Shown: positions 21,391 to 63,989 of the stretch, piece by piece
How positions within the stretch are numbered: the stretch's first letter is position 1
Layout: every line of letters starts with the position of its first letter
Sequence record: NC_061418.1
Reading direction: 5' to 3' (one strand)
DNA: 64,000 bases
Program-made: the position numbers and the translations under genes
The notes under the pieces: model-generated
The model's input: the letters and a program-made list of their open reading frames with translations, nothing else
Database searches by the model: none
What the model was told of the DNA's origin: nothing

Positions 21391-22353
21391 TTACCCTTTG
21401 TTATTTGTACCCAGTTCACTGTATTGATCGAGTAAAAAGTTAAGATACGCCTCATGGGGATCAGTGCGGAAAATCATCTCATGAAGCACGGTAAAAGGCA
21501 CAGGATGGTCAAAGACCCCGCCAGCAGCCTCAGCGTGCCCACCACCGTTAAATCGCACCGCGGCTTGTTGTGCCAAACCTGTCCCTTTGCGTGATCGGAA
21601 CGACAAACCGAGACCGTTCCGGTTTAACGTTACGTTCACGACCAGATTAACTTTGTCGTCTTGGGCCATGATTGTACTGGCCGCTTCAGAAGCGTAATAA
21701 TACGGAGCAGAAATATACGCCACTGAGAAAGGACTTTCTGCCGCCTCTTCAATAATGACTGCTTTATTCAGGTGAAACGCAATATTTTTATCCCGACCTT
21801 TTACTAACAGTTCGGCCTGCGGGCGGAGAATTTCTTCAACTTGTTCTTTGCTGTATTTAAACAACCCAATGAAAGGTGGGAAAATTTCATCCTTATCCCC
21901 CTTCCTCAAATACTGAACAAAGAGCTCGTGGTAATTCCGTTCGCTCTCTTCTGCAATCCAGAGGTCGCGGTTATTGATTAAACGAATCACTTCTGGCATA
22001 GGGGTAGAATTAACATATTTCCATGCTAAACCCGCCCCTGAAAGTTCTGTGTCGAAATAAACAACCGTCGCCCCGAAGAATTTTTGGATCTTATCACATT
22101 CTTCTTTTTTGTCTGCATGATGATCGAGGATCACAATAGACCGTATACGTGCCGCGTTCTTCTCAACCCATTCAAACGGCGGAGTGAAATCGACAAAAAC
22201 AATATGCACCGGCTCCTCATTTTCTAAGTCCGGCATAGCACGGTAGTTTACCGGGATGAAAGTCTGCAGCCTTGTATATTGATACATGATTGCCGCCGCC
22301 GCAAAACCGTCCATGCAAAGGTCGTGGTAATAAACGATTATTTCATTATTCAT
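21391..22353 (-). CDS. DHH/DHHA1 family phosphoesterase
   Basis: YYHDLCMDG, FVDF, ILDHH and C-terminal GGGHAEAAG motifs. Confidence 0.88.
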   Translation of the reverse strand: MNNEIIVYYHDLCMDGFAAAAIMYQYTRLQTFIPVNYRAMPDLENEEPVHIVFVDFTPPFEWVEKNAARIRSIVILDHHADKKEECDKIQKFFGATVVYFDTELSGAGLAWKYVNSTPMPEVIRLINNRDLWIAEESERNYHELFVQYLRKGDKDEIFPPFIGLFKYSKEQVEEILRPQAELLVKGRDKNIAFHLNKAVIIEEAAESPFSVAYISAPYYYASEAASTIMAQDDKVNLVVNVTLNRNGLGLSFRSRKGTGLAQQAAVRFNGGGHAEAAGGVFDHPVPFTVLHEMIFRTDPHEAYLNFLLDQYSELGTNNKG

Positions 22354-24121: not shown

Positions 24122-24128
24122 AACAAAT

Positions 24129-24146
24129 AAGGGCGAAAACGCCCTT
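24129..24146 (-). terminator. intrinsic terminator-like hairpin
   Basis: AAGGGCG-AAAA-CGCCCTT directly after the 24151 stop. Confidence 0.6.
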
Positions 24147-24150
24147 AGAA

Positions 24151-24318
24151 TTAAATTTTACATGCCCCGCCTTCGCAGTCATCGCTGGCTTCGATTTCGG
24201 GTTGTTCTTCGATAAACGCTTCGGCTTTCGCTAACGCCGATTCCGCTTCTTCTTCGCTCAGAGTGAATGAATCAAAATCCAGACTTTCGTCTTTCTTTTC
24301 AGGGGTGGTTTGTGACAT
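24151..24318 (-). CDS. 55-aa acidic mini-protein ending in an NrdA-like redox tail (DDCEGGACKI)
   Basis: Hand-translated MSQTTPEKKDESLDFDSFTLSEEEAESALAKAEAFIEEQPEIEASDDCEGGACKI; AAGGA RBS; own terminator; not in the ORF track. Confidence 0.8.
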   Translation of the reverse strand: MSQTTPEKKDESLDFDSFTLSEEEAESALAKAEAFIEEQPEIEASDDCEGGACKI

Positions 24319-24431
24319 GGTAACGCTATCCTTTCTTTATTCTAGGCGGCTTGCCTCAAAGAAAGACAGAATAAACTTAAAAAAGAAAAAGATCTAGGAG
24401 CGGAGAGGGTTTACCCTCTCCACCCACTTGT

Positions 24432-24902
24432 TTAGCCGAGATAGAAGCAGTTACCGCCTTTATTTTCGGCGACGATTTTCTTGAGCCCGTTGGTTGAGAA
24501 AACAACGAAGGTCTCCGGATGATCTTGTACGTAAACCTTAACGGTTTTTGCTTTGGTTTTCTTAACGCCTTCGAAGAACAAGCGCCAGTTACTTGCCCCA
24601 ACTGTAGAAGCAGGAGAGATCATCTGGTACTTCTGACCGGCCATTTCGATAACCAGCGCGTAGCGATCATCATCGCTGGAAAGCGAGTTGCCATTAGTAC
24701 CGTTCAGAAACAGCGCTTGAACCGGCCATTGGTCGCCAGTATCGCGGCAAGAGAATGCGAGCGAGAAACCGTCGCTATTTTCGGTGTAGAACTCCAGAGT
24801 ACCCTGCTGATAAGATTCGGTCCAATTATTGACGATGGCCATGGCATTGAAGGATGCGATAGAGGACAGGGCGATGAGTGAAGCAGCAATGAATTTTTTC
24901 AT
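24432..24902 (-). CDS. exported protein with Sec signal peptide
   Basis: MKKFIAASLIALSSIASFNAMA signal peptide; AAGG RBS. Confidence 0.75.
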   Translation of the reverse strand: MKKFIAASLIALSSIASFNAMAIVNNWTESYQQGTLEFYTENSDGFSLAFSCRDTGDQWPVQALFLNGTNGNSLSSDDDRYALVIEMAGQKYQMISPASTVGASNWRLFFEGVKKTKAKTVKVYVQDHPETFVVFSTNGLKKIVAENKGGNCFYLG

Positions 24903-24970: not shown

Positions 24971-25279
24971 CTAGTACCAGTAATTACGGGAATGAAACGA
25001 TTCCCTTGCTACCGCTTCTCTTGTTTTCTGATAAACGAGACCTTCGAAGACAGCGCGCATGATCCAGAAAGCGACATGACTGATCAGGTAGCCGATTTTA
25101 CTTAAGAAACAAGTCCAATCACGGAGTTTTCTTATCGAGCGACCTTTCCAGGAATTATCGTAAAGGACTTCTGGTGTTGCGCACTTTGCAGTTAACTTTT
25201 TGTTAGCGATGTAGGTTAAGAAAGTGATCATCGCCAGGACAGCAAAAGTAACAACAGAAATGAACAGATAGAATTCCAT
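24971..25279 (-). CDS. membrane protein
   Basis: N-terminal TM segment plus a second hydrophobic stretch; GAGGA RBS. Confidence 0.7.
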   Translation of the reverse strand: MEFYLFISVVTFAVLAMITFLTYIANKKLTAKCATPEVLYDNSWKGRSIRKLRDWTCFLSKIGYLISHVAFWIMRAVFEGLVYQKTREAVARESFHSRNYWY

Positions 25280-25299
25280 GGAGTAGTCCTCGGTTTGTC

Positions 25300-25608
25300 T
25301 TAAAGTGGTTGGTAGTCAGCATCATCAAATTTGTCGTGCCACGTGCGACGGTTCTTGCCGGACACGCGATGGCGGTTACGATGACGTTTGTGTTTTTCTT
25401 TTTGTCTTTCCGTTGGTTCACCGTAGAAAAGAACATCGTTAACAGCAGGTTCTTCGTTAACAATTTCTTCGGCGGCACAAACTACTTCGGTCGTTACCTC
25501 TTCGGTAACGACGTCGGCGTCAACCTTACCGCGGTAGAATATGGTAAAAAATGCACTACAGAGTAAACCAATGACAACAAGAATAGCAAAAATGATTAAA
25601 AAAGTCAT
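25300..25608 (-). CDS. single-TM membrane protein with acidic middle and basic tail
   Basis: FLIIFAILVVIGLLCSAFFTIF; AAGGAG RBS. Confidence 0.7.
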   Translation of the reverse strand: MTFLIIFAILVVIGLLCSAFFTIFYRGKVDADVVTEEVTTEVVCAAEEIVNEEPAVNDVLFYGEPTERQKEKHKRHRNRHRVSGKNRRTWHDKFDDADYQPL

Positions 25609-25681
25609 GGTTATATCTCCTTATTTTTAGCGAACAAAGTTTTTAAAGTTTAACTACGAACTCAACGACGACAATTTTTAC

Positions 25682-25954
25682 TTAGCACCAATAGTTATTA
25701 ATTTCCAACTCTACTTCAATTACGTATTTAAAAACCAACGCGGAAACAGGCACGAAGATAAAGAGGATTGCGTAATACGGTACAAACGCGCAGCTCAACA
25801 GAGCAGAGATACCGACCAAGCAAGAGAAGATGTAGCAACCTTTAATGATCTCATTGCGTTTTTCGATATCGAATAACTTATTACGATCAACGGCAACTGC
25901 AATGATAATCGCTATCGCTGCTAATAAGCCCATTACGATAGTAAAGATTAACAT
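25682..25954 (-). CDS. multi-TM membrane protein
   Basis: Three hydrophobic segments in 90 aa. Confidence 0.7.
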   Translation of the reverse strand: MLIFTIVMGLLAAIAIIIAVAVDRNKLFDIEKRNEIIKGCYIFSCLVGISALLSCAFVPYYAILFIFVPVSALVFKYVIEVELEINNYWC

Positions 25955-25966
25955 AATTTTTTCCTT

Positions 25967-26158
25967 TTACTTTAAGAGTAGACTTAGATGTGAGAGAGTT
26001 GTTTGCGTTATAAGAGTCGCATACGGCGATGTCCAGAACCAGACGGCGAAGCCTGTCATTTGTTCTGCAACTACCGAACCAGTAAGAGGGTTTACTGCTA
26101 TTGTCCCTGAACTCTGATCTTTCCTCGATTTCGGAAGAGTCAGTAGGTACAACGCCAC
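25967..26158 (-). CDS. small hypothetical protein
   Basis: 63 aa, GTG start after GAGG. Confidence 0.5.
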   Translation of the reverse strand: MALYLLTLPKSRKDQSSGTIAVNPLTGSVVAEQMTGFAVWFWTSPYATLITQTTLSHLSLLLK

Positions 26159-26289
26159 AGCCTCGATTACAGGTGTCGGGTGAGTAACGAGAAATATCGT
26201 CTTATAACGGTTTGAGAGTGTGAGAATTTAATTTAGCTTATCGTAAGGCGTTTCCTTCTTATCTCGTGTGCCAAGGGTGAGGTGACGAC

Positions 26290-26577
26290 TTAAGCGGTTA
26301 CCGCTGCGTCAGAGACGTCGGTCTCGCCTGCGTCAGTCGCAGTCTCGCCGTCAGTGGCAGGAGAAATGACGGTTTTGAGGTTGTTGTAGCTATCGTGAAT
26401 ATAGCTGAAGATAACCAAGACCGCAAAAGCGTAGGCCGCCACTTCCATGGCAGTAGCCATGCAGAACGCGGCGAAGATTGCCAGCGCGGCAACGATCAGG
26501 GTGTCGGTGATGAAAGCAAAGATTGCTTTGGTTTTCTCAGTGAAAGAGAAAGAGAAGAACGCTTTGATTTTTTCCAT
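26290..26577 (-). CDS. membrane protein (2 TM) with acidic tail
   Basis: AAGGT RBS; hydrophobic core; C-terminal DGETATDAGETD. Confidence 0.75.
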   Translation of the reverse strand: MEKIKAFFSFSFTEKTKAIFAFITDTLIVAALAIFAAFCMATAMEVAAYAFAVLVIFSYIHDSYNNLKTVISPATDGETATDAGETDVSDAAVTA

Positions 26578-26657
26578 GATAATTTACCTTTTGAATTGAA
26601 TATTTTAACTACGGGTGAGAGTGCACTACTCACGCTGTTGAGAGGCAGCGCTTACTA

Positions 26658-26777
26658 CTATTTGACCGCTTTTAAGTAACTCCCTACGGCGACGGCGAAA
26701 ACACAGGCCGGGAGTAAAGCCAAGTCAAGAATAAGTACCGAGGAAATAATTCCCAGTACCGCGAAAGACGTTTTCAT
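26658..26777 (-). CDS. 39-aa membrane micro-protein
   Basis: Hand-translated MKTSFAVLGIISSVLILDLALLPACVFAVAVGSYLKAVK; GGAGG RBS; TAATG coupling; not in the track. Confidence 0.65.
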   Translation of the reverse strand: MKTSFAVLGIISSVLILDLALLPACVFAVAVGSYLKAVK

Positions 26778-26947
26778 TACAACGCCTCCGGTGAATGGGT
26801 TGCGTTGAAATTGGCTTTGTTAGTTTGCTCTTCTAAAAACGCTCCGGCGGCCCCTGCTATGAAAGCTACCAGAAGTGTTGGGATGATAGTCAGTTCAAAG
26901 AAGGTGCAGATCAGCAGGGTGAGAATTAATGCGATGAAGTAAGTCAT
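26777..26947 (-). CDS. 56-aa membrane micro-protein
   Basis: Hand-translated MTYFIALILTLLICTFFELTIIPTLLVAFIAGAAGAFLEEQ...; AGGAG RBS; not in the track. Confidence 0.7.
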   Translation of the reverse strand: MTYFIALILTLLICTFFELTIIPTLLVAFIAGAAGAFLEEQTNKANFNATHSPEAL

Positions 26948-26962
26948 GATGATTTCTCCTTC

Positions 26963-27121
26963 TTAGGGTAAATAGGTAACGGTGACTAACAGAGCGAACG
27001 GTGAAACGATATACCAGACGAGCACAGAGACGAATCCGTAAAGGATGGCCATCGGTAACGAGACGCCGAAACAAAGCAACGCAATGAGCGTGACAATTAA
27101 TAAAAGTATACTTTCTTTCAT
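26963..27121 (-). CDS. 52-aa membrane micro-protein, first gene after an early promoter
   Basis: Hand-translated MKESILLLIVTLIALLCFGVSLPMAILYGFVSVLVWYIVSPFALLVTVTYLP; GAGG RBS; not in the track. Confidence 0.7.
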   Translation of the reverse strand: MKESILLLIVTLIALLCFGVSLPMAILYGFVSVLVWYIVSPFALLVTVTYLP

Positions 27122-42285: not shown

Positions 42286-42366
42286 GTTATCAAACTAATT
42301 GGAACGGTAGTGAAAAGAGAACGGTAATTTTCCTATGACAATAACCCCATGAGAAAGGTAACGGTA

Positions 42367-44586
42367 ATGAGTGACTTCGGGAATAAGATCAGTGAATTAA
42401 ACAGTTTGACTAGCGGGAATATGGCAGGAGAGTTACCGCTAAGTCTGACGTTATCTAGCGGTACTTTAGCAACGAATAAGATCACGTTGAGTCAGGTTCG
42501 GGATCTTTTTGATTTTGACCATGCCTTTGAGACAGTGGAGGAAGGGATTGCTGCAACAGTAGAAAACCAACTCTTCTACGTTTATGTCGACAGTAACAAA
42601 TTATCGGTTAATGAGTATATCAGAACAAACATCGGTGCAAGTGCGGTTATTGGTAGCAGCGGCACGAAGAAAACCATTTATATCCCTGCGTTACTAAAAC
42701 ATATCCAAATCCAAGCGAATCAATTTTCAGATTTAACATCGATCCAACCGTCTTACGAAGGGCAAACGATTTATCTGAAAAGCTACTACGCAAATGGGAC
42801 TACAGGAGCCGGCCACTTTAAGGCGATTCGAAACTCTACTGTTGAGAATGACTTAGGAATTCATGTCCGGTATGATGGGCAATGGGTCTGGCAGCGTGTT
42901 CCGAACAAAGGGTCTTTTTCGGTGTTAGATTTCGGCGCCAAAGGGGACGGGGTTACTGATGATTATTTTGCTTTCCAGGGCGCAACGTTTGGTGTTTACC
43001 AATACGGCGGTGGAACGATAAATGTTCCACCGCCAGTGGTTGCCTATCGCATTACCTTCCCGGTGTTCTTTTTTGCGAATACAGTAATGAAAGGTCAAGG
43101 AATGGCCTCAAAAATTATTTTTGAGAACCCATTACTTTCTGCAAAAGGTCGTGGTGGTTTTGTGATGGGGAGTTCTCGCGAGGCAAACAGAAACAAAGGG
43201 ATGGCAGTTTGGCGAACTGGTTCTGTTACTGGCGGGAACGTGGCTGACAATACCTTCGTTAACCCAGCGCAAAAGCAATATCTTCGCGATAATCAGAGCT
43301 TAGCGCAATGTAGAAATTGCTCTATTAGCGATTTGTATTTAGTTGCCATTTACACGGGGTCGAATAAAAATGGCGGTTACGGTATCAACTTGAATAATGC
43401 CATGGATATCGAAATCGATTCTATTTACGGCGACGGTTGGACTGAGTTAGTTAACGTGGGGTCAGATACTATCCCAGAGACGCCATCTTGTTATCGCGTC
43501 AATATCCGAAACCTTTATTGCTTAACTCCAAATCAGGACAAATCGTTCTATACTCTTTTCTTCGTCGCGAATTCGACAGACGTACACGTCGATAACGCCA
43601 TCCAATATGGGCCTTTAGTAGATGGTACACTAAACGGCTCTGGCGGTGCAACTAACCTTTGTGAAGATGTTTCCTTCACTAACATCAAAATCATGAACCT
43701 GGGGCGTTCTGCAAGTTCTGAGGGGCTGTTAATCAATAACACGAAAGGTTGTATTGTCCGCGGTTTATTTGTAAACAATGCAAAGAATGGTCTTAGTACA
43801 TTTTATTCTGATACGACCTTTAATGACGCTAACAAGCCAAACTTTTTTAGCAATATCGAAGTGACAAATTCAGACAACGGTATTAGTATCGCTGGGAAAT
43901 ACGGGATCTTCAATGATCTTAAAGTGAGCAATGTTATTTACGACACTTATTTCAGAACATCGAACGCCCAATTCAATGTGCTGAAGTTCAAACCCCAGAA
44001 ACCGTTCTACCGAGAAACCCAGTCTGCATTCGGTTTCTTCCAGAACAATACGATAAAAGGGTATAAGATCGGTTACATTTATGTCACCCCGACAGCGTAC
44101 TTAGTGACCCCGGCAAGTGAACTGACACGGTACGATGGACGTTTCATCGCCACTGGCACTACAGACGTTATTTTACGCATTCCGATACCAACCCATGTCA
44201 ATGGAGTTGGCGATGTCAGGGCTTATCTGACATTTAATAAAAACTCATTAGCGGGTAACGCTAACGGTGCAACGAATTTCGCTATGACTTTACGTCGACT
44301 CCCTTCATGGGACGGTAACATCGGTAACACTTTGTTCACTGAATTGACCAACAGTAAAGTTTCCACTGTTGACAATACAATGAATCCGCAAGATACAACT
44401 ATTGTTTGTCAACCCTCCTCTAACACGGCAAACTCCTCACCGGAGGCGTACACCTTGGGGTATGTCCCTATGCGAGGTTCTGTTAATGGGTTAGACAATG
44501 CGTTGGAGTTACTTGTCACTATGACCAATAACGTGCCAAATAACTACATTAAAGAAATACGTATTTCAGTGTTACTTGACGATTGA
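42367..44586 (+). CDS. tailspike / capsule depolymerase (pectate-lyase-like beta-helix)
   Basis: N-terminal attachment region; SVLDFGAKGDGVTDD beta-helix cap; Asn/Ile-rich repeats; CCTATG upstream; start ATG 42367. Confidence 0.85.
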   Translation: MSDFGNKISELNSLTSGNMAGELPLSLTLSSGTLATNKITLSQVRDLFDFDHAFETVEEGIAATVENQLFYVYVDSNKLSVNEYIRTNIGASAVIGSSGTKKTIYIPALLKHIQIQANQFSDLTSIQPSYEGQTIYLKSYYANGTTGAGHFKAIRNSTVENDLGIHVRYDGQWVWQRVPNKGSFSVLDFGAKGDGVTDDYFAFQGATFGVYQYGGGTINVPPPVVAYRITFPVFFFANTVMKGQGMASKIIFENPLLSAKGRGGFVMGSSREANRNKGMAVWRTGSVTGGNVADNTFVNPAQKQYLRDNQSLAQCRNCSISDLYLVAIYTGSNKNGGYGINLNNAMDIEIDSIYGDGWTELVNVGSDTIPETPSCYRVNIRNLYCLTPNQDKSFYTLFFVANSTDVHVDNAIQYGPLVDGTLNGSGGATNLCEDVSFTNIKIMNLGRSASSEGLLINNTKGCIVRGLFVNNAKNGLSTFYSDTTFNDANKPNFFSNIEVTNSDNGISIAGKYGIFNDLKVSNVIYDTYFRTSNAQFNVLKFKPQKPFYRETQSAFGFFQNNTIKGYKIGYIYVTPTAYLVTPASELTRYDGRFIATGTTDVILRIPIPTHVNGVGDVRAYLTFNKNSLAGNANGATNFAMTLRRLPSWDGNIGNTLFTELTNSKVSTVDNTMNPQDTTIVCQPSSNTANSSPEAYTLGYVPMRGSVNGLDNALELLVTMTNNVPNNYIKEIRISVLLDD

Positions 44587-58324: not shown

Positions 58325-60106
58325 CTACAACCACTGCGCCGCACGTTGACGAATAGTACGAAGACTTTCCAGTACTTTCACGTCGCCGTTCAGGTACACA
58401 GTCCGCATCGCGTCAACCTCACTACCTCGAAGTGCTTCATACTCTTCACGGGTCAGGTTATCACGCAGTTCGAGTTTTCCGTTCTCGCCCTTCGCAACGA
58501 TCAGGTAACCTTTTGCCGATTTTTTGGTGCCATCGTCGGTTTTCGGGTTTTTCGCGATAGAGTAATGTTTACTGTTAACCTTCCCAGCGGTCGCCTTCAT
58601 GGCGATGCCCAGGGTGTCACGGGTAACATACTGGAATTCGAAACTGCCCACACCAAAGACCACGTTGGAACTACAGAACCCGTTCGCTTTCAAACGAGAA
58701 AGGATCTGGGTCATGCGGGTCAATGTGATTGCATCCCCGTAAATCAAACCGACATGCGGATCCAGTTCTTTGTAACCCGCAGCATTGGTTGTTCCGCCGA
58801 AGATTTCAAAAAGGATTTGCACGGCCCCTTTTTTCTCTTCCAAAGAAATAGGTTTACCGCTTTCAGTCGAATAGAAAACGTTGTCGATACAATAGCACTC
58901 GTATCCGTTTTCAGAAGAAAAACGACGAACATTTTCTTCTGTTTTCTCTCGACTTAATTCCGAGTAGAGCGTTTCACCGTCGATTCGCGGGTCGGGATAA
59001 ATACCAGCAGAAAGGTGATTATCGCCATCCCAAGTATAGCCGCAGAGGATGTGATACGGGTTACCGCTATCCGGACGATAGACCAGTTTACCGTCACGCG
59101 CCATAATCGCATCTTTATTAGCGATGGCTTTGGTGGTGATGGTATCGAAGAAGTCGTTAGTATCGCTGACGAAGCTGAAAACGCCAGACGGATAAACTTC
59201 AGTGATCAGTCGACGTTGGAAAAGTTCTTCCGCTTTCGACAGCAGTTCCGCTTCAGTCGCATTCTTGTACCCCGGAGTAGCTTGTAACTGCTCGACATAG
59301 ACTGCGATGTTCAAACAGGTTACACTGTGCTCTGTAGCGGGCACACTCCCGGCGATTTCAGAAATCGGCATATCGCCTTCTGGGTTATAGAAGCGATTCG
59401 CTGTCCAGACCGAAGGGAAGCTATCGCTCCCTTTGAAGTAGATCAGCTGACCGACTGAGCTGTTGGCATCATCGAACATACCCGACATACCGCGCAGTGC
59501 GAAGTTATGAGATTGGTAGTCGATAAAGGCTTTTGCCGCACCCGTTTCGTTAGCGTACTGCTCTAACACTCGACGGAAGTGCAACGCTTTCGTTGCCAGC
59601 ACACATGGCTTCCAGAGTTCGTTACTCCAGAGGTCTTCGAAATAACCCGTCAGCCACCCGAAGCCATCCACTGTGTTTTCAATCGTCAGGAATGGAACAC
59701 GAATAGGGACGAGTGAGCCTTCCGGTACCGCACGGATTTCCAGTGGGAGATAACCCAGCTCGTGAAGTGCTTTCAGGTGAGCGGATTTCACCACACCTTT
59801 ACCCAGAACACCATCCATATACTGAAGGTATTCTGCCTCCGATTCGTTGAACGGCGCTTTAAAGAAGTTATCGAAACTTCCCACCAACCAACGCAGAACC
59901 AGGCGCTGCATTCCCATGAACACCGAACCGTCGAAGTCCAGAGGCGTATTGAAGTACGTATGACTACGCGCCGTCAGGTTTTCAAAGAAGCTGTCAGTGC
60001 CCAGAGGTTGTTGATTGATGTGCCCCGTTTTGTAGGCGTCGCACAGCAGGAAAACCAGCGGATCTTCAGTATAGAACTTTGGGTCTTTCAGTAAAGGGTT
60101 GGTCAT
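58325..60106 (-). CDS. nadV: nicotinamide phosphoribosyltransferase-like enzyme (NadV family; probable NARP1 Namat)
   Basis: CDAYKTGH, HNFALRGM, VPATEHSV, VSDT.DF, RPDSGNP, IYGDAIT and FGVGSF motifs. Confidence 0.9.
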   Translation of the reverse strand: MTNPLLKDPKFYTEDPLVFLLCDAYKTGHINQQPLGTDSFFENLTARSHTYFNTPLDFDGSVFMGMQRLVLRWLVGSFDNFFKAPFNESEAEYLQYMDGVLGKGVVKSAHLKALHELGYLPLEIRAVPEGSLVPIRVPFLTIENTVDGFGWLTGYFEDLWSNELWKPCVLATKALHFRRVLEQYANETGAAKAFIDYQSHNFALRGMSGMFDDANSSVGQLIYFKGSDSFPSVWTANRFYNPEGDMPISEIAGSVPATEHSVTCLNIAVYVEQLQATPGYKNATEAELLSKAEELFQRRLITEVYPSGVFSFVSDTNDFFDTITTKAIANKDAIMARDGKLVYRPDSGNPYHILCGYTWDGDNHLSAGIYPDPRIDGETLYSELSREKTEENVRRFSSENGYECYCIDNVFYSTESGKPISLEEKKGAVQILFEIFGGTTNAAGYKELDPHVGLIYGDAITLTRMTQILSRLKANGFCSSNVVFGVGSFEFQYVTRDTLGIAMKATAGKVNSKHYSIAKNPKTDDGTKKSAKGYLIVAKGENGKLELRDNLTREEYEALRGSEVDAMRTVYLNGDVKVLESLRTIRQRAAQWL

Positions 60107-61682: not shown

Positions 61683-63989
61683 ATGAATATTATTTCGATG
61701 CCATCCAATCAGTTTAGATTGATCGATAGCGGGAGAGCCGCCAACTCAGGCTCTTTGTATATCGGCAAGATTAATACTGACCCCACGGTGCTAAGTAATC
61801 AATTGACAGTAACCGCAATGAAAACAGACGGTACGGTATCTACTATTTCACAACCCATTGCTCTAAACAGCAATGGGATACCTGTTGATAATTTAGGTAA
61901 CACAGTTACTCTTTCGGTAGAAACGCATTACAGCGTGACGATTTTAGACGCCTACGGGAAAATTCAACAGAATATACCTGTAAATTTTGTTGAAGAAATA
62001 GGGAGTTTTGCCGCTCTCCGCGCGCTGCCGGTTTTCAGAACAGGGCAAAAAATTTATTTGCGCAGTTGGCATGAAGGTCAAGCTTTAGGTGGAGGGGAAT
62101 TTGTGGGTTTCACCGGATCAGCTACAGATGACGGTGGTGTAATCGCGGCAGGAAACGGATTTTATTGGCAGCGCGTAGAGAGATTATCACTAGATTTAAC
62201 AATGTTTGGTGCAATCCCGAATTCAATATCACCTACTTTTGATTCGACAAATTATGTCCAAAAAGCATTTGATTACGCATCAAAAGCCTCGGCGAGTGAA
62301 ATTACTGTTTCTGGCTTTTATAATATTTTCAGCACAACTACTACTTTAACGCTTCCTGGAGATGACGGTACTGTTTATCCGGGATGGGTAAATAACGGGG
62401 ACAGTAATCTCTCACCGGAGACTATTTACACGCAACCAGTGTGCCTTAAATTAACTGGTAGAGTAACTATTCGCGGATCAGATGTAAATAAAGACGGATT
62501 TGTAGGGAATTGGTCAATAAATTCGTCTCCTATAGATACCGATCAGCCGATTGGTATTCTTTTTACTGCTGGGAGTAAATATCAAGGGACTGTAATATAT
62601 AATTTAATTAATATCAATATTTCTAATTTCTTTATAGGTAGAGTAGTAGAAGGAACGGCAGAACAATCCTTTGAACAAATTAAAGTTTCTAATTGCGCCA
62701 TAGCCGGTATATTTCAGGGCATTGAACGTTGTTCTGCCGGAACCTTACATTTCTCAGGTAACTACACAGGAGATATTCACGGTGGTTGGTGGACGCAAAG
62801 AAATGATAGTAACAATAACCCGTATTTACCGCCGTATCCAGCGACAGACGTATGGTCATTAGGTTGGACCGATTTTTATAAAGTTGATTTTGTTGTTTAT
62901 GGGCAAGTTGATCAAGCTTTCGGTGATCGACATAAGAGTGTTGATACTTATTTTGATACTTATTTCTACAAAAACGCCAATAGTGCAAAAACTTCGGCAG
63001 GCGGGAGATTATCTAATAATACCGGCGGGACAGCTTCAAAAATGAGCCCTTATCGTGGGGTAGTAGGGAGAGTCCTTACTGTTTATTCTCGCTACGGTCG
63101 CGCAGCTGCTTCTTACGAAATTAAATCAGTCAAAGTTTTAGGCCCTCATAGAGCACCGTTTTTCTTTAATAACGAGAATGGGATAGTGACGTATCTTTGT
63201 TCTATCAATAATATTTATCTAGAGGGCGTTGGTTTAATTCAACGTTCTTTGGGTTCTTCTGCGACTGGAAATTTCTTTGGTGTTGATAATCGAGATGTTT
63301 ATAGACCCGAAGGTTATGGTATCGGTTATTTAGTTGCACACGGGTTCAATTCTGACAAGGTGGTACTCTCGTCAAACTGTCAACTAGCTGCATATTCTGC
63401 CAATGGGATAGGGACGAATAACCCGCTTTCGGTTTCTATTACATATCCTAGTAAAGGAGCAAAACAAACCAGAGATCCGTTTTTAGTTTCAATTTTTGAT
63501 GAAAACGGTTATCGGATAATAGGTAGTATTAATGAAAGTCGTGCGATACTGCCTCATGGTTCGTTGGGTTCTTACGAGGATTTTGTCTATGCTGGAAAAA
63601 TAAGTTTTATCCCAACGCTTTTTGTAAATGGGGTTGAATATACTAATTTAGAAACTGCTGTAGGTACAGGTAAGATTGTAGGTAAAATTTTCTTCTTCTC
63701 CCTAAAACTATTTAAAAACGGCGCGTTGGCTTACCCTTCTGGTCCAATAACTATAGGTAACTTACCTGTAAGTGTTGCAAGTGGCGGTAATTCGATTTCA
63801 AGTATCGAGGTTAAAAACATTATCGGCGCGACTGATGCAATGAATTTAAAGGCAAGTATTACAAATACGACCTTAAAAATTTTAAGCGGAGTCTCGGCAA
63901 CCACGTTTAACGCGGCAAACCTGAACACTAGTGCTGGAAATGCGCCTTATATTTACTACGATGTAGCGGGGTATTATGAGATAGCTTAA
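61683..63989 (+). CDS. tailspike / depolymerase with a P22-type head-binding N-terminal domain
   Basis: N-terminus (GSLYIGKINTDP..NQL.V..DG...ISQPI.LNSNG) aligns with P22 gp9 (GKIYIGQIDTDP..NQIPV..DG..ITQPL.INAAG); DLTMFGA beta-helix cap; GGAG RBS. Confidence 0.85.
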   Translation: MNIISMPSNQFRLIDSGRAANSGSLYIGKINTDPTVLSNQLTVTAMKTDGTVSTISQPIALNSNGIPVDNLGNTVTLSVETHYSVTILDAYGKIQQNIPVNFVEEIGSFAALRALPVFRTGQKIYLRSWHEGQALGGGEFVGFTGSATDDGGVIAAGNGFYWQRVERLSLDLTMFGAIPNSISPTFDSTNYVQKAFDYASKASASEITVSGFYNIFSTTTTLTLPGDDGTVYPGWVNNGDSNLSPETIYTQPVCLKLTGRVTIRGSDVNKDGFVGNWSINSSPIDTDQPIGILFTAGSKYQGTVIYNLININISNFFIGRVVEGTAEQSFEQIKVSNCAIAGIFQGIERCSAGTLHFSGNYTGDIHGGWWTQRNDSNNNPYLPPYPATDVWSLGWTDFYKVDFVVYGQVDQAFGDRHKSVDTYFDTYFYKNANSAKTSAGGRLSNNTGGTASKMSPYRGVVGRVLTVYSRYGRAAASYEIKSVKVLGPHRAPFFFNNENGIVTYLCSINNIYLEGVGLIQRSLGSSATGNFFGVDNRDVYRPEGYGIGYLVAHGFNSDKVVLSSNCQLAAYSANGIGTNNPLSVSITYPSKGAKQTRDPFLVSIFDENGYRIIGSINESRAILPHGSLGSYEDFVYAGKISFIPTLFVNGVEYTNLETAVGTGKIVGKIFFFSLKLFKNGALAYPSGPITIGNLPVSVASGGNSISSIEVKNIIGATDAMNLKASITNTTLKILSGVSATTFNAANLNTSAGNAPYIYYDVAGYYEIA

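Follow-up and report, generated by a model that had tools for sequence, protein, structure and literature searches.

Among the known protein regulators of ribonucleotide reductase (RNR), yeast Sml1, and also Spd1, Dif1 and Hug1, are small disordered proteins which act on the large subunit of the enzyme, and Sml1 interferes with the function of the C-terminal tail of this subunit. Synthetic peptides of the R2 C-terminus serve as RNR inhibitors. We know of no bacterial or phage counterpart of the Sml1-type regulators and of no protein that regulates the activity of a bacterial RNR, and literature searches found neither. In class Ia RNR it is through the C-terminus of NrdB, bound in a cleft of alpha, that beta is tethered. 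The flexible tail of alpha (NrdA) carries cysteines that re-reduce the active site, and these cysteines are in turn reduced by thioredoxin (PMC11903788). A fusion of a glutaredoxin domain to NrdB has been reported (PMC6187632).

The present study deals with a small phage gene whose product resembles the tail of alpha and whose family also shows a likeness to that of NrdB. The window, that is the whole stretch of 64,000 nucleotides that was analysed, forms the final 64 kb of the 296,707-bp genome of Klebsiella phage KpLz-2_45 (NC_061418.1), a member of the genus Siatvirus. This phage encodes PhuZ, and chimallin was found among its 18 largest unannotated ORFs; it is thus a jumbo phage of the nucleus-forming type. 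The gene codes for an acidic protein of 55 aa, called the mini-protein here, which ends in SDDCEGGACKI followed by the stop codon TAA. The features of the locus are as follows.

24151-24318, minus strand: mini-protein gene, 55 codons plus TAA, with ATG start; RefSeq gp267
24154-24186, minus strand: NrdA-like redox tail SDDCEGGACKI, residues 45-55, with Cys48 and Cys53, from sequence comparison
24205-24255, minus strand: single predicted amphipathic helix, residues 22-38, from AlphaFold2
24259-24282, minus strand: acidic-aromatic motif LDFDSFTL, residues 13-20, in the alignment column of the NrdB C-terminal peptide of relatives
24329-24333, minus strand: ribosome-binding site AAGGA, 10 nt 5' of the ATG, from direct reading of the sequence
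24128-24147, minus strand: intrinsic terminator of the mini-protein gene, 8-bp G+C stem, loop of 4 and T-run (-13 kcal/mol, z = -2.6)
24396-24428, minus strand: hairpin terminator of the upstream 156-aa gene (-24 kcal/mol, z = -5.0; equalled by 0 of 200 shuffles)

Since the hairpin at 24396-24428 terminates the preceding gene, the mini-protein gene is a separate transcription unit. An earlier sequence-only reading had described a 55-aa acidic ORF with a ribosome-binding site and its own terminator, and the AAGGA and the hairpin at 24128-24147 agree with this. It had also taken the ORF to be absent from the ORF track, but RefSeq already annotates it as hypothetical protein YP_010297871.1 (gp267). 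The window has a single occurrence of the back-translated tail pattern, and 100 shuffled sequences have none. AlphaFold2 with a 34-sequence alignment predicted one helix (residues 22-38) between two flexible ends, with block pLDDT of 77-90 in the helix against 51-57 at either end.

The surroundings of the gene contain several other features. The upstream neighbour (24432-24902, minus) codes for a 156-aa protein with an apparent N-terminal signal peptide and ends with the hairpin listed above. Beyond it, 24971-27121 (minus) holds at least six small ORFs of 52-102 aa, annotated as hypothetical, whose strongly hydrophobic stretches are probably those of small membrane proteins. A gene for a DHH phosphoesterase lies at 21391-22353 (minus). 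Two further proteins are probably tailspikes or depolymerases: one of 745 aa (42349-44586, plus) matches a pectate-lyase-like fold weakly and below threshold, and one of 768 aa (61683-63989, plus) has a P22-type head-binding domain. The protein encoded at 58325-60106 (minus) is similar to nicotinamide or nicotinate phosphoribosyltransferase, and together with PnuC and NadR, which are encoded elsewhere in the phage (gp068 and gp069; L026, 37228-39273), it makes up a set for NAD salvage; sets of this kind have been linked to the countering of defences that deplete NAD. Outside the window, the DNA primase gene gp198 (L029) is the only gene flagged as frameshifted in the RefSeq record and has one frameshift.

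The tail was compared with the sequences of bacterial RNR. A blastn search of 5,426 E. coli genomes with the mini-ORF matched the last 30 nt of nrdA and nothing else. The E. coli NrdA that was fetched ends in DDDCESGACKI and the main E. coli NrdA cluster in DDGCESGACKI, the phage and E. coli tails being identical at 8 of 9 positions over C-E-x-G-A-C-K-I. Bacteria were then scanned, one genome per species, with the pattern D/E-C-x-[GS]-G-[AG]-C-K-I-stop; at least 120 loci were collected, and the counts are those of a sample. Among the matches listed, 104 of the 117 in-frame ORFs with this ending were NrdA homologues. Their identity to E. coli NrdA is 68-92%; complete copies measure about 755-820 aa, and in every case the protein ends with the tail. 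The exact phage ending, CEGGACKI, is found in NrdA of Yersinia, Proteus, Photorhabdus, Pectobacterium, Providencia and Shewanella. Among the best 120 NrdA clusters, of which the named ones are all from Enterobacterales, 78 end in DDGCESGACKI and 12 in DDGCEGGACKI. The last 9-19 residues of the mini-protein match the Cys-x4-Cys-Lys-Ile redox tail with which class Ia NrdA of gammaproteobacteria ends, as the sequence-only reading had proposed from the E. coli enzyme; the fetched E. coli NrdA and the sampled ORFs bear it out. The match to the present host is not complete. NrdA of Klebsiella aerogenes ends in DDDCESGACKI, so the phage tail differs from the Klebsiella type at one position, G for S, a point against a mimic of both tails that is aimed at host NrdA. 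The host enzyme was represented here by K. aerogenes, K. michiganensis and a Klebsiella sp., with NrdA and NrdB of K. pneumoniae and Rheinheimera left out.

A tail of this kind on a small ORF could be what is left of a decayed nrdA gene. This was rejected, as no nrdA sequence is present in the flanks or in other frames and the gene has its own ribosome-binding site and terminators. The earlier observation that no nrdA lies adjacent can be extended to the whole phage: tblastn of E. coli NrdA and NrdB against the 297-kb genome matched only NrdA residues 747-761, at the mini-ORF itself. RNR Pfam domains of any class are absent from the 18 largest unannotated ORFs, and no RNR is annotated in KpLz-2_45. 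NrdA and NrdB are likewise missing from the whole genome of podophage Asterion, which represents a second lineage. It had been suggested that the mini-protein complements in trans a tail-less phage NrdA, as in a split RNR. Since KpLz-2_45 has no recognisable RNR by tblastn, Pfam or annotation, this reading fails, and Asterion gives the same answer; the terminal cysteines of a phage nrdA, which were to be inspected, have no gene to be inspected in. A search of KpLz-2_45 for ORFs with a CxxC of the thioredoxin or glutaredoxin type gave nothing convincing, the two regex matches looking spurious.

The mini-protein carries the C-terminal Cys-x4-Cys redox tail ending in Lys-Ile that marks NrdA of gammaproteobacteria, but the PF02867 barrel and ATP cone of that protein (about 760 aa) are lacking, the protein being 55 aa long with no Pfam domain. 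Thioredoxin, glutaredoxin and NrdH do not fit either, as it has one helix, a spacing of Cx4C instead of CxxC, and no Pfam or NCBIfam match. Searches of Pfam, NCBIfam and the sequences of the PDB produced no meaningful match, and no search found homology to Sml1-type inhibitors. Three PHROGs of unknown function (14561, 10239 and 38753) match weakly: the mini-protein hits phrog_14561 with the tail only (E=0.048), and relatives hit phrog_10239 with E values down to 5e-5.

It was found that the mini-protein belongs to a large family whose hosts are jumbo phages, 48-50-kb podophages and some bacterial chromosomes. A tblastn search, which had been proposed for jumbo phages, detected stand-alone acidic relatives of 45-60 aa in Klebsiella phages FBKp24, Centimanus and Miami, in about 20 Erwinia jumbo phages and in Yersinia phage phiR1-37 (g117). 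A profile search gave at least 167 clusters of 42-68 aa. Among the best 120 of the 167 none has a functional name and every one ends in C-x2-4-C plus two residues, the commonest endings being DCEGGACKI (29), ECEGGACKI (19) and DCESGACKI (18); the two tail cysteines are invariant across the family among the matches listed. When 1.84 billion representatives were searched exhaustively with a profile, 69 clusters were obtained, each match reaching the C-terminus of its protein, and in IMG/VR 19 of 19 pattern matches were terminal and 0 of 19 were of NrdA size. All 171 family members match the C-terminus of NrdA, with a median alignment of 19 aa. One subgroup is identical to Yersinia NrdA at 13 of 13 positions, and another follows Photorhabdus NrdA through E-V-V-E...D-C-E-G-G-A-C-K-I. 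By their sequences these look like nrdA 3' ends captured from different host lineages.

In 10 Siatvirus genomes the mini-protein has the same sequence throughout (100% identity), and its counterparts in FBKp24 and Centimanus share 72-85% identity with it. Codon comparison with FBKp24 gave 15 synonymous and 7 non-synonymous differences, and the tail codons vary synonymously between phages. This pattern of codon changes indicates that the gene is under purifying selection. The claim that the tail has been freed as an independent gene agrees with its stand-alone and conserved state, and the proviso that it might be only a 3' remnant of nrdA is answered by the same conservation together with the empty flanks. 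A function that has nothing to do with RNR, be it that of a nrdA remnant, of a RiPP-type precursor or of a small cysteine-based metal-binding peptide, is very improbable. Two cysteines and one helix could in principle make a metal site in a dimer. However, at least 167 clusters are under purifying selection, the genes have their own signals for translation and termination, and no common maturase accompanies them, the neighbours being different in every lineage examined.

Expression of one relative speaks in the other direction. In RNA-seq of phiR1-37 the values for g117 (L005, 2489-2644) are 3.9, 1.5 and 1.2, as against hundreds to tens of thousands for its neighbours (PMC4848604, supplement), and a host-type sigma promoter has been placed 5' of it (PMC4848604, table). 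The gene is nearly silent, which favours the absence of an RNR-related role and counts against the leading explanation given below. The possibility that the mini genes are members of the NrdR regulon was also considered. A matrix was trained on the regions upstream of 63 nrdA genes, where it scores 17-24; upstream of 24 mini genes it scored at most 10.7 and found no NrdR-type box, and membership was rejected. As an internal control, de novo word counts in the 63 nrdA upstream regions (L035-L154) recovered a palindromic NrdR-type box and a DnaA-box-like word.

A second resemblance concerns the N-terminal half. In 81 of the sampled bacterial loci the NrdB C-termini follow [DS]-D-[FL]-x-[DG]-F-[ED]-L, for example SDFDDFEL in Psychrobacter, DFDDFDL in Marinomonas and Colwellia, and DDLSDFEL in Yersinia; the E. 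coli NrdB that was fetched ends in DDLSNFQL. Some family members carry exact NrdB C-terminal octamers near the N-terminus. Members P0034 and P0006 start with MSDFDDFDL and MSLDFDDFEL and score within the range of real NrdB termini, and P0034 is at most one residue away from each of the two Thalassotalea tails. The NrdB matrix is weak for single sequences because acidic-aromatic composition alone scores well, and family-level counts were therefore added. With composition-preserving shuffles as reference, DF[ED][LI] occurs in 33 of 117 acidic members where 1.6 are expected, a 5-mer in 31 of 117 where 2.7 are expected, and the strict 7-mer [DE][FL]x[DGENSH][FIM][EDQ][LI] in 6 of 117 where 0.4 are expected; the acidic members are related, so these counts are not independent events. 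On these matches, about a quarter of the acidic members appear to carry the alpha-binding C-terminal peptide of NrdB near the N-terminus.

The internal motif of the mini-protein had earlier been compared with the end of E. coli NrdB. The comparison is stronger for the family, with its exact octamers and its excess over shuffles, but the mini-protein's own copy is diverged and marginal. LDFDSFTL scores 7.8 bits with a shuffle p of 0.058 under a matrix that favours acidic-aromatic composition, and it lies outside the strict NrdB pattern; it aligns to the column of the relatives' NrdB peptide. At the positions of N and Q in E. coli NrdB it has the uncharged residues S and T, which is suggestive of host matching. 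Mimicry of NrdB is also argued against by position, as the peptide is C-terminal in NrdB and internal in the mini-protein; nowhere in the family is the motif C-terminal.

With motif, helix and tail in one short chain, the mini-protein is best read as a putative imitation of both mobile tails of class Ia RNR. Alpha is the only partner common to the two copied tails, and we infer from this that host NrdA is the target, which we consider probable. The NrdB-like motif would park the mini-protein in the beta-tail cleft of host NrdA, and its tethered tail would then compete with that of alpha, both for the active site and for thioredoxin or glutaredoxin. The outcome would be a competitive brake on host dNTP synthesis, similar to the action of Sml1 and of peptide inhibitors, and such a brake could serve phages that are able to live on recycled host DNA. 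The tail identity, the NrdB-type motif among the acidic members, the selection, the gene anatomy and the lack of RNR in both phages (and of thioredoxin and glutaredoxin in KpLz-2_45) all argue for a dual mimic. The neighbours in other phages, which include genes for dCMP deaminase, thymidylate synthase, endonuclease I and DNA polymerase, place relatives close to nucleotide metabolism and are consistent with it.

The direction of the effect is the weakest step. If host NrdA is the target, inhibition is modestly favoured: beta-tail peptides compete with beta for alpha, and Sml1 provides a precedent. On the other hand, a 297-kb phage without RNR would seem to depend on host dNTP synthesis, and the invariant cysteines point to real thiol-disulfide cycling and not to a plain plug. 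Taken as a whole, inhibition of host NrdA by a mimic of both tails is our leading explanation, and a tentative one.

The same cysteines, and the invariance of the whole NrdA tail pattern, fit a mini-protein that works as a trans-acting electron shuttle. It would dock briefly on alpha, give its reduced cysteine pair to the oxidised active site and be recharged by host thioredoxin or glutaredoxin, and the turnover of host RNR would go up. This would suit KpLz-2_45 and the second lineage, which have no RNR of their own, and the nucleotide-metabolism genes near relatives also agree with it. In a trapped E. coli RNR complex, density for the beta tail was seen on one alpha only, and in B. subtilis RNR thioredoxin was on the other, non-catalysing side (PMC11903788); the cleft could thus be free where re-reduction occurs. 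But alpha already has its own tail in cis, free tails need the same reductants for recharging so that a gain at steady state may not result, and anchoring in the beta cleft competes with beta. Boosting of host RNR therefore appears unlikely, though it is the strongest rival of the inhibitory dual mimic.

Not all members of the family have both halves. A class of 61 aa has the tail and no NrdB-like motif, which counts against dual mimicry as a general rule. Its genes (L031-L033, 8001-8186; L160, 19131-19316) directly follow DNA polymerase A in the 48-50-kb Klebsiella and Citrobacter podophages Klyazma, Asterion, VR7901 and CVT22. The idea that this class is a longer C-terminal fragment of NrdA was discarded, as there was no signal above reversed decoys once the tail was removed. 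A protein with the tail alone could act as a bait or sink for host reductants and leave RNR untouched, the tail being a natural substrate of thioredoxin and glutaredoxin. Such a decoy is improbable for the family: the NrdB-like motif of the acidic class points to alpha and away from the reductants, and something must keep oxidising the tail.

The module also occurs on larger proteins. Eight clusters of larger proteins (163-296 aa) end in the whole motif-helix-tail arrangement, and one of these clusters has a cpYpsA SLOG nucleotide-binding domain; P0154 is one larger protein, and P0121-P0133, L023 and L024 also end in the module or in the tail alone. Two tail-ending proteins belong to the N4 gp49/Sf6 gp66 family and the remainder have no known domain. 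These fusions, and the position of the 61-aa class after DNA polymerase A, would suit a portable address label that brings cargo to host RNR or thioredoxin, the minis being the bare label. We regard such a docking tag as improbable, since stand-alone minis exceed fusions by about 20 to 1 and most of the cargo domains are without known function.

Twelve chromosomal copies were found in Rheinheimera, Alishewanella and relatives, including Arsukibacterium-like genomes, and they occupy two conserved sites. At one site the mini gene lies just 5' of a catalase-like gene on the same strand; at the other it is flanked by a dihydroorotase-like gene on one side and the gene of an MFS transporter on the other. 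In five loci a 502-aa ORF is located 3' of the mini gene, at a distance of 136-183 nt in four (L064, L072, L124 and L130) and of about 0.9 kb in L127; further chromosomal loci are L034, L036, L049, L051, L056, L061, L119 and L134, and P0042 occurs in a further bacterial lineage. The conserved sites hint at a role in the cell itself, which may be linked to stress.

RNR controls the entry into DNA synthesis and is a target for antibacterials; a protein that acts on it in this way would be a new layer of control. It would also show how phages without RNR handle the host dNTP supply, which bears on defence systems that sense dNTP rises. The family would provide natural, lineage-matched peptide templates for RNR-directed inhibitors, and well over 170 clusters now labelled hypothetical would gain a name. 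As the alpha tail is flexible, its path to the active site and to thioredoxin is hard to see, and a tail that is soluble and brings an anchor along could make it easier to observe. No description of a tail-bearing mini-protein, or of its tail letters, was found in the literature that was covered, from which most subscription journals are absent; the earlier reading knew of none either. Whichever direction applies, we lean slightly towards a natural protein ligand of bacterial class Ia RNR that has two heads and is matched to the host, and which would shut down or take over the re-reduction half-cycle of the host. It would be the first protein to regulate the activity of a bacterial RNR through copies of the tails of both subunits. 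Phages without RNR would have invented or captured it more than once, and Rheinheimera, Alishewanella and Arsukibacterium would have kept it on the chromosome.

A comparison with the known systems places the mini-protein between several of them. It shares with the NrdA tail (the C754/C759 region of E. coli) the terminal C-x-[GS]-G-[AG]-C-K-I-stop and a similarity that reaches 13-19 residues into the acidic linker, but here the tail sits on 55 aa, without catalytic barrel or ATP cone, in a phage that has no RNR. The NrdB C-terminal peptide is reproduced as exact terminal octamers in some family members. In the family, however, the motif stands at the N-terminus or inside the chain and not at a free C-terminus; unlike the synthetic R2 peptides it occurs in nature, it is joined to a second mimic, and in the mini-protein it is diverged. 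The fusion of glutaredoxin to NrdB shows that the electron-delivery parts of RNR are modular and can move between polypeptides; there a reductant domain has been added to an RNR subunit, whereas in the mini-protein the acceptor tail has been freed from the enzyme. Like the Sml1-type regulators the mini-protein is small and mostly disordered, but no sequence relationship was found to that group, which is eukaryotic and does not copy the tails of the subunits.
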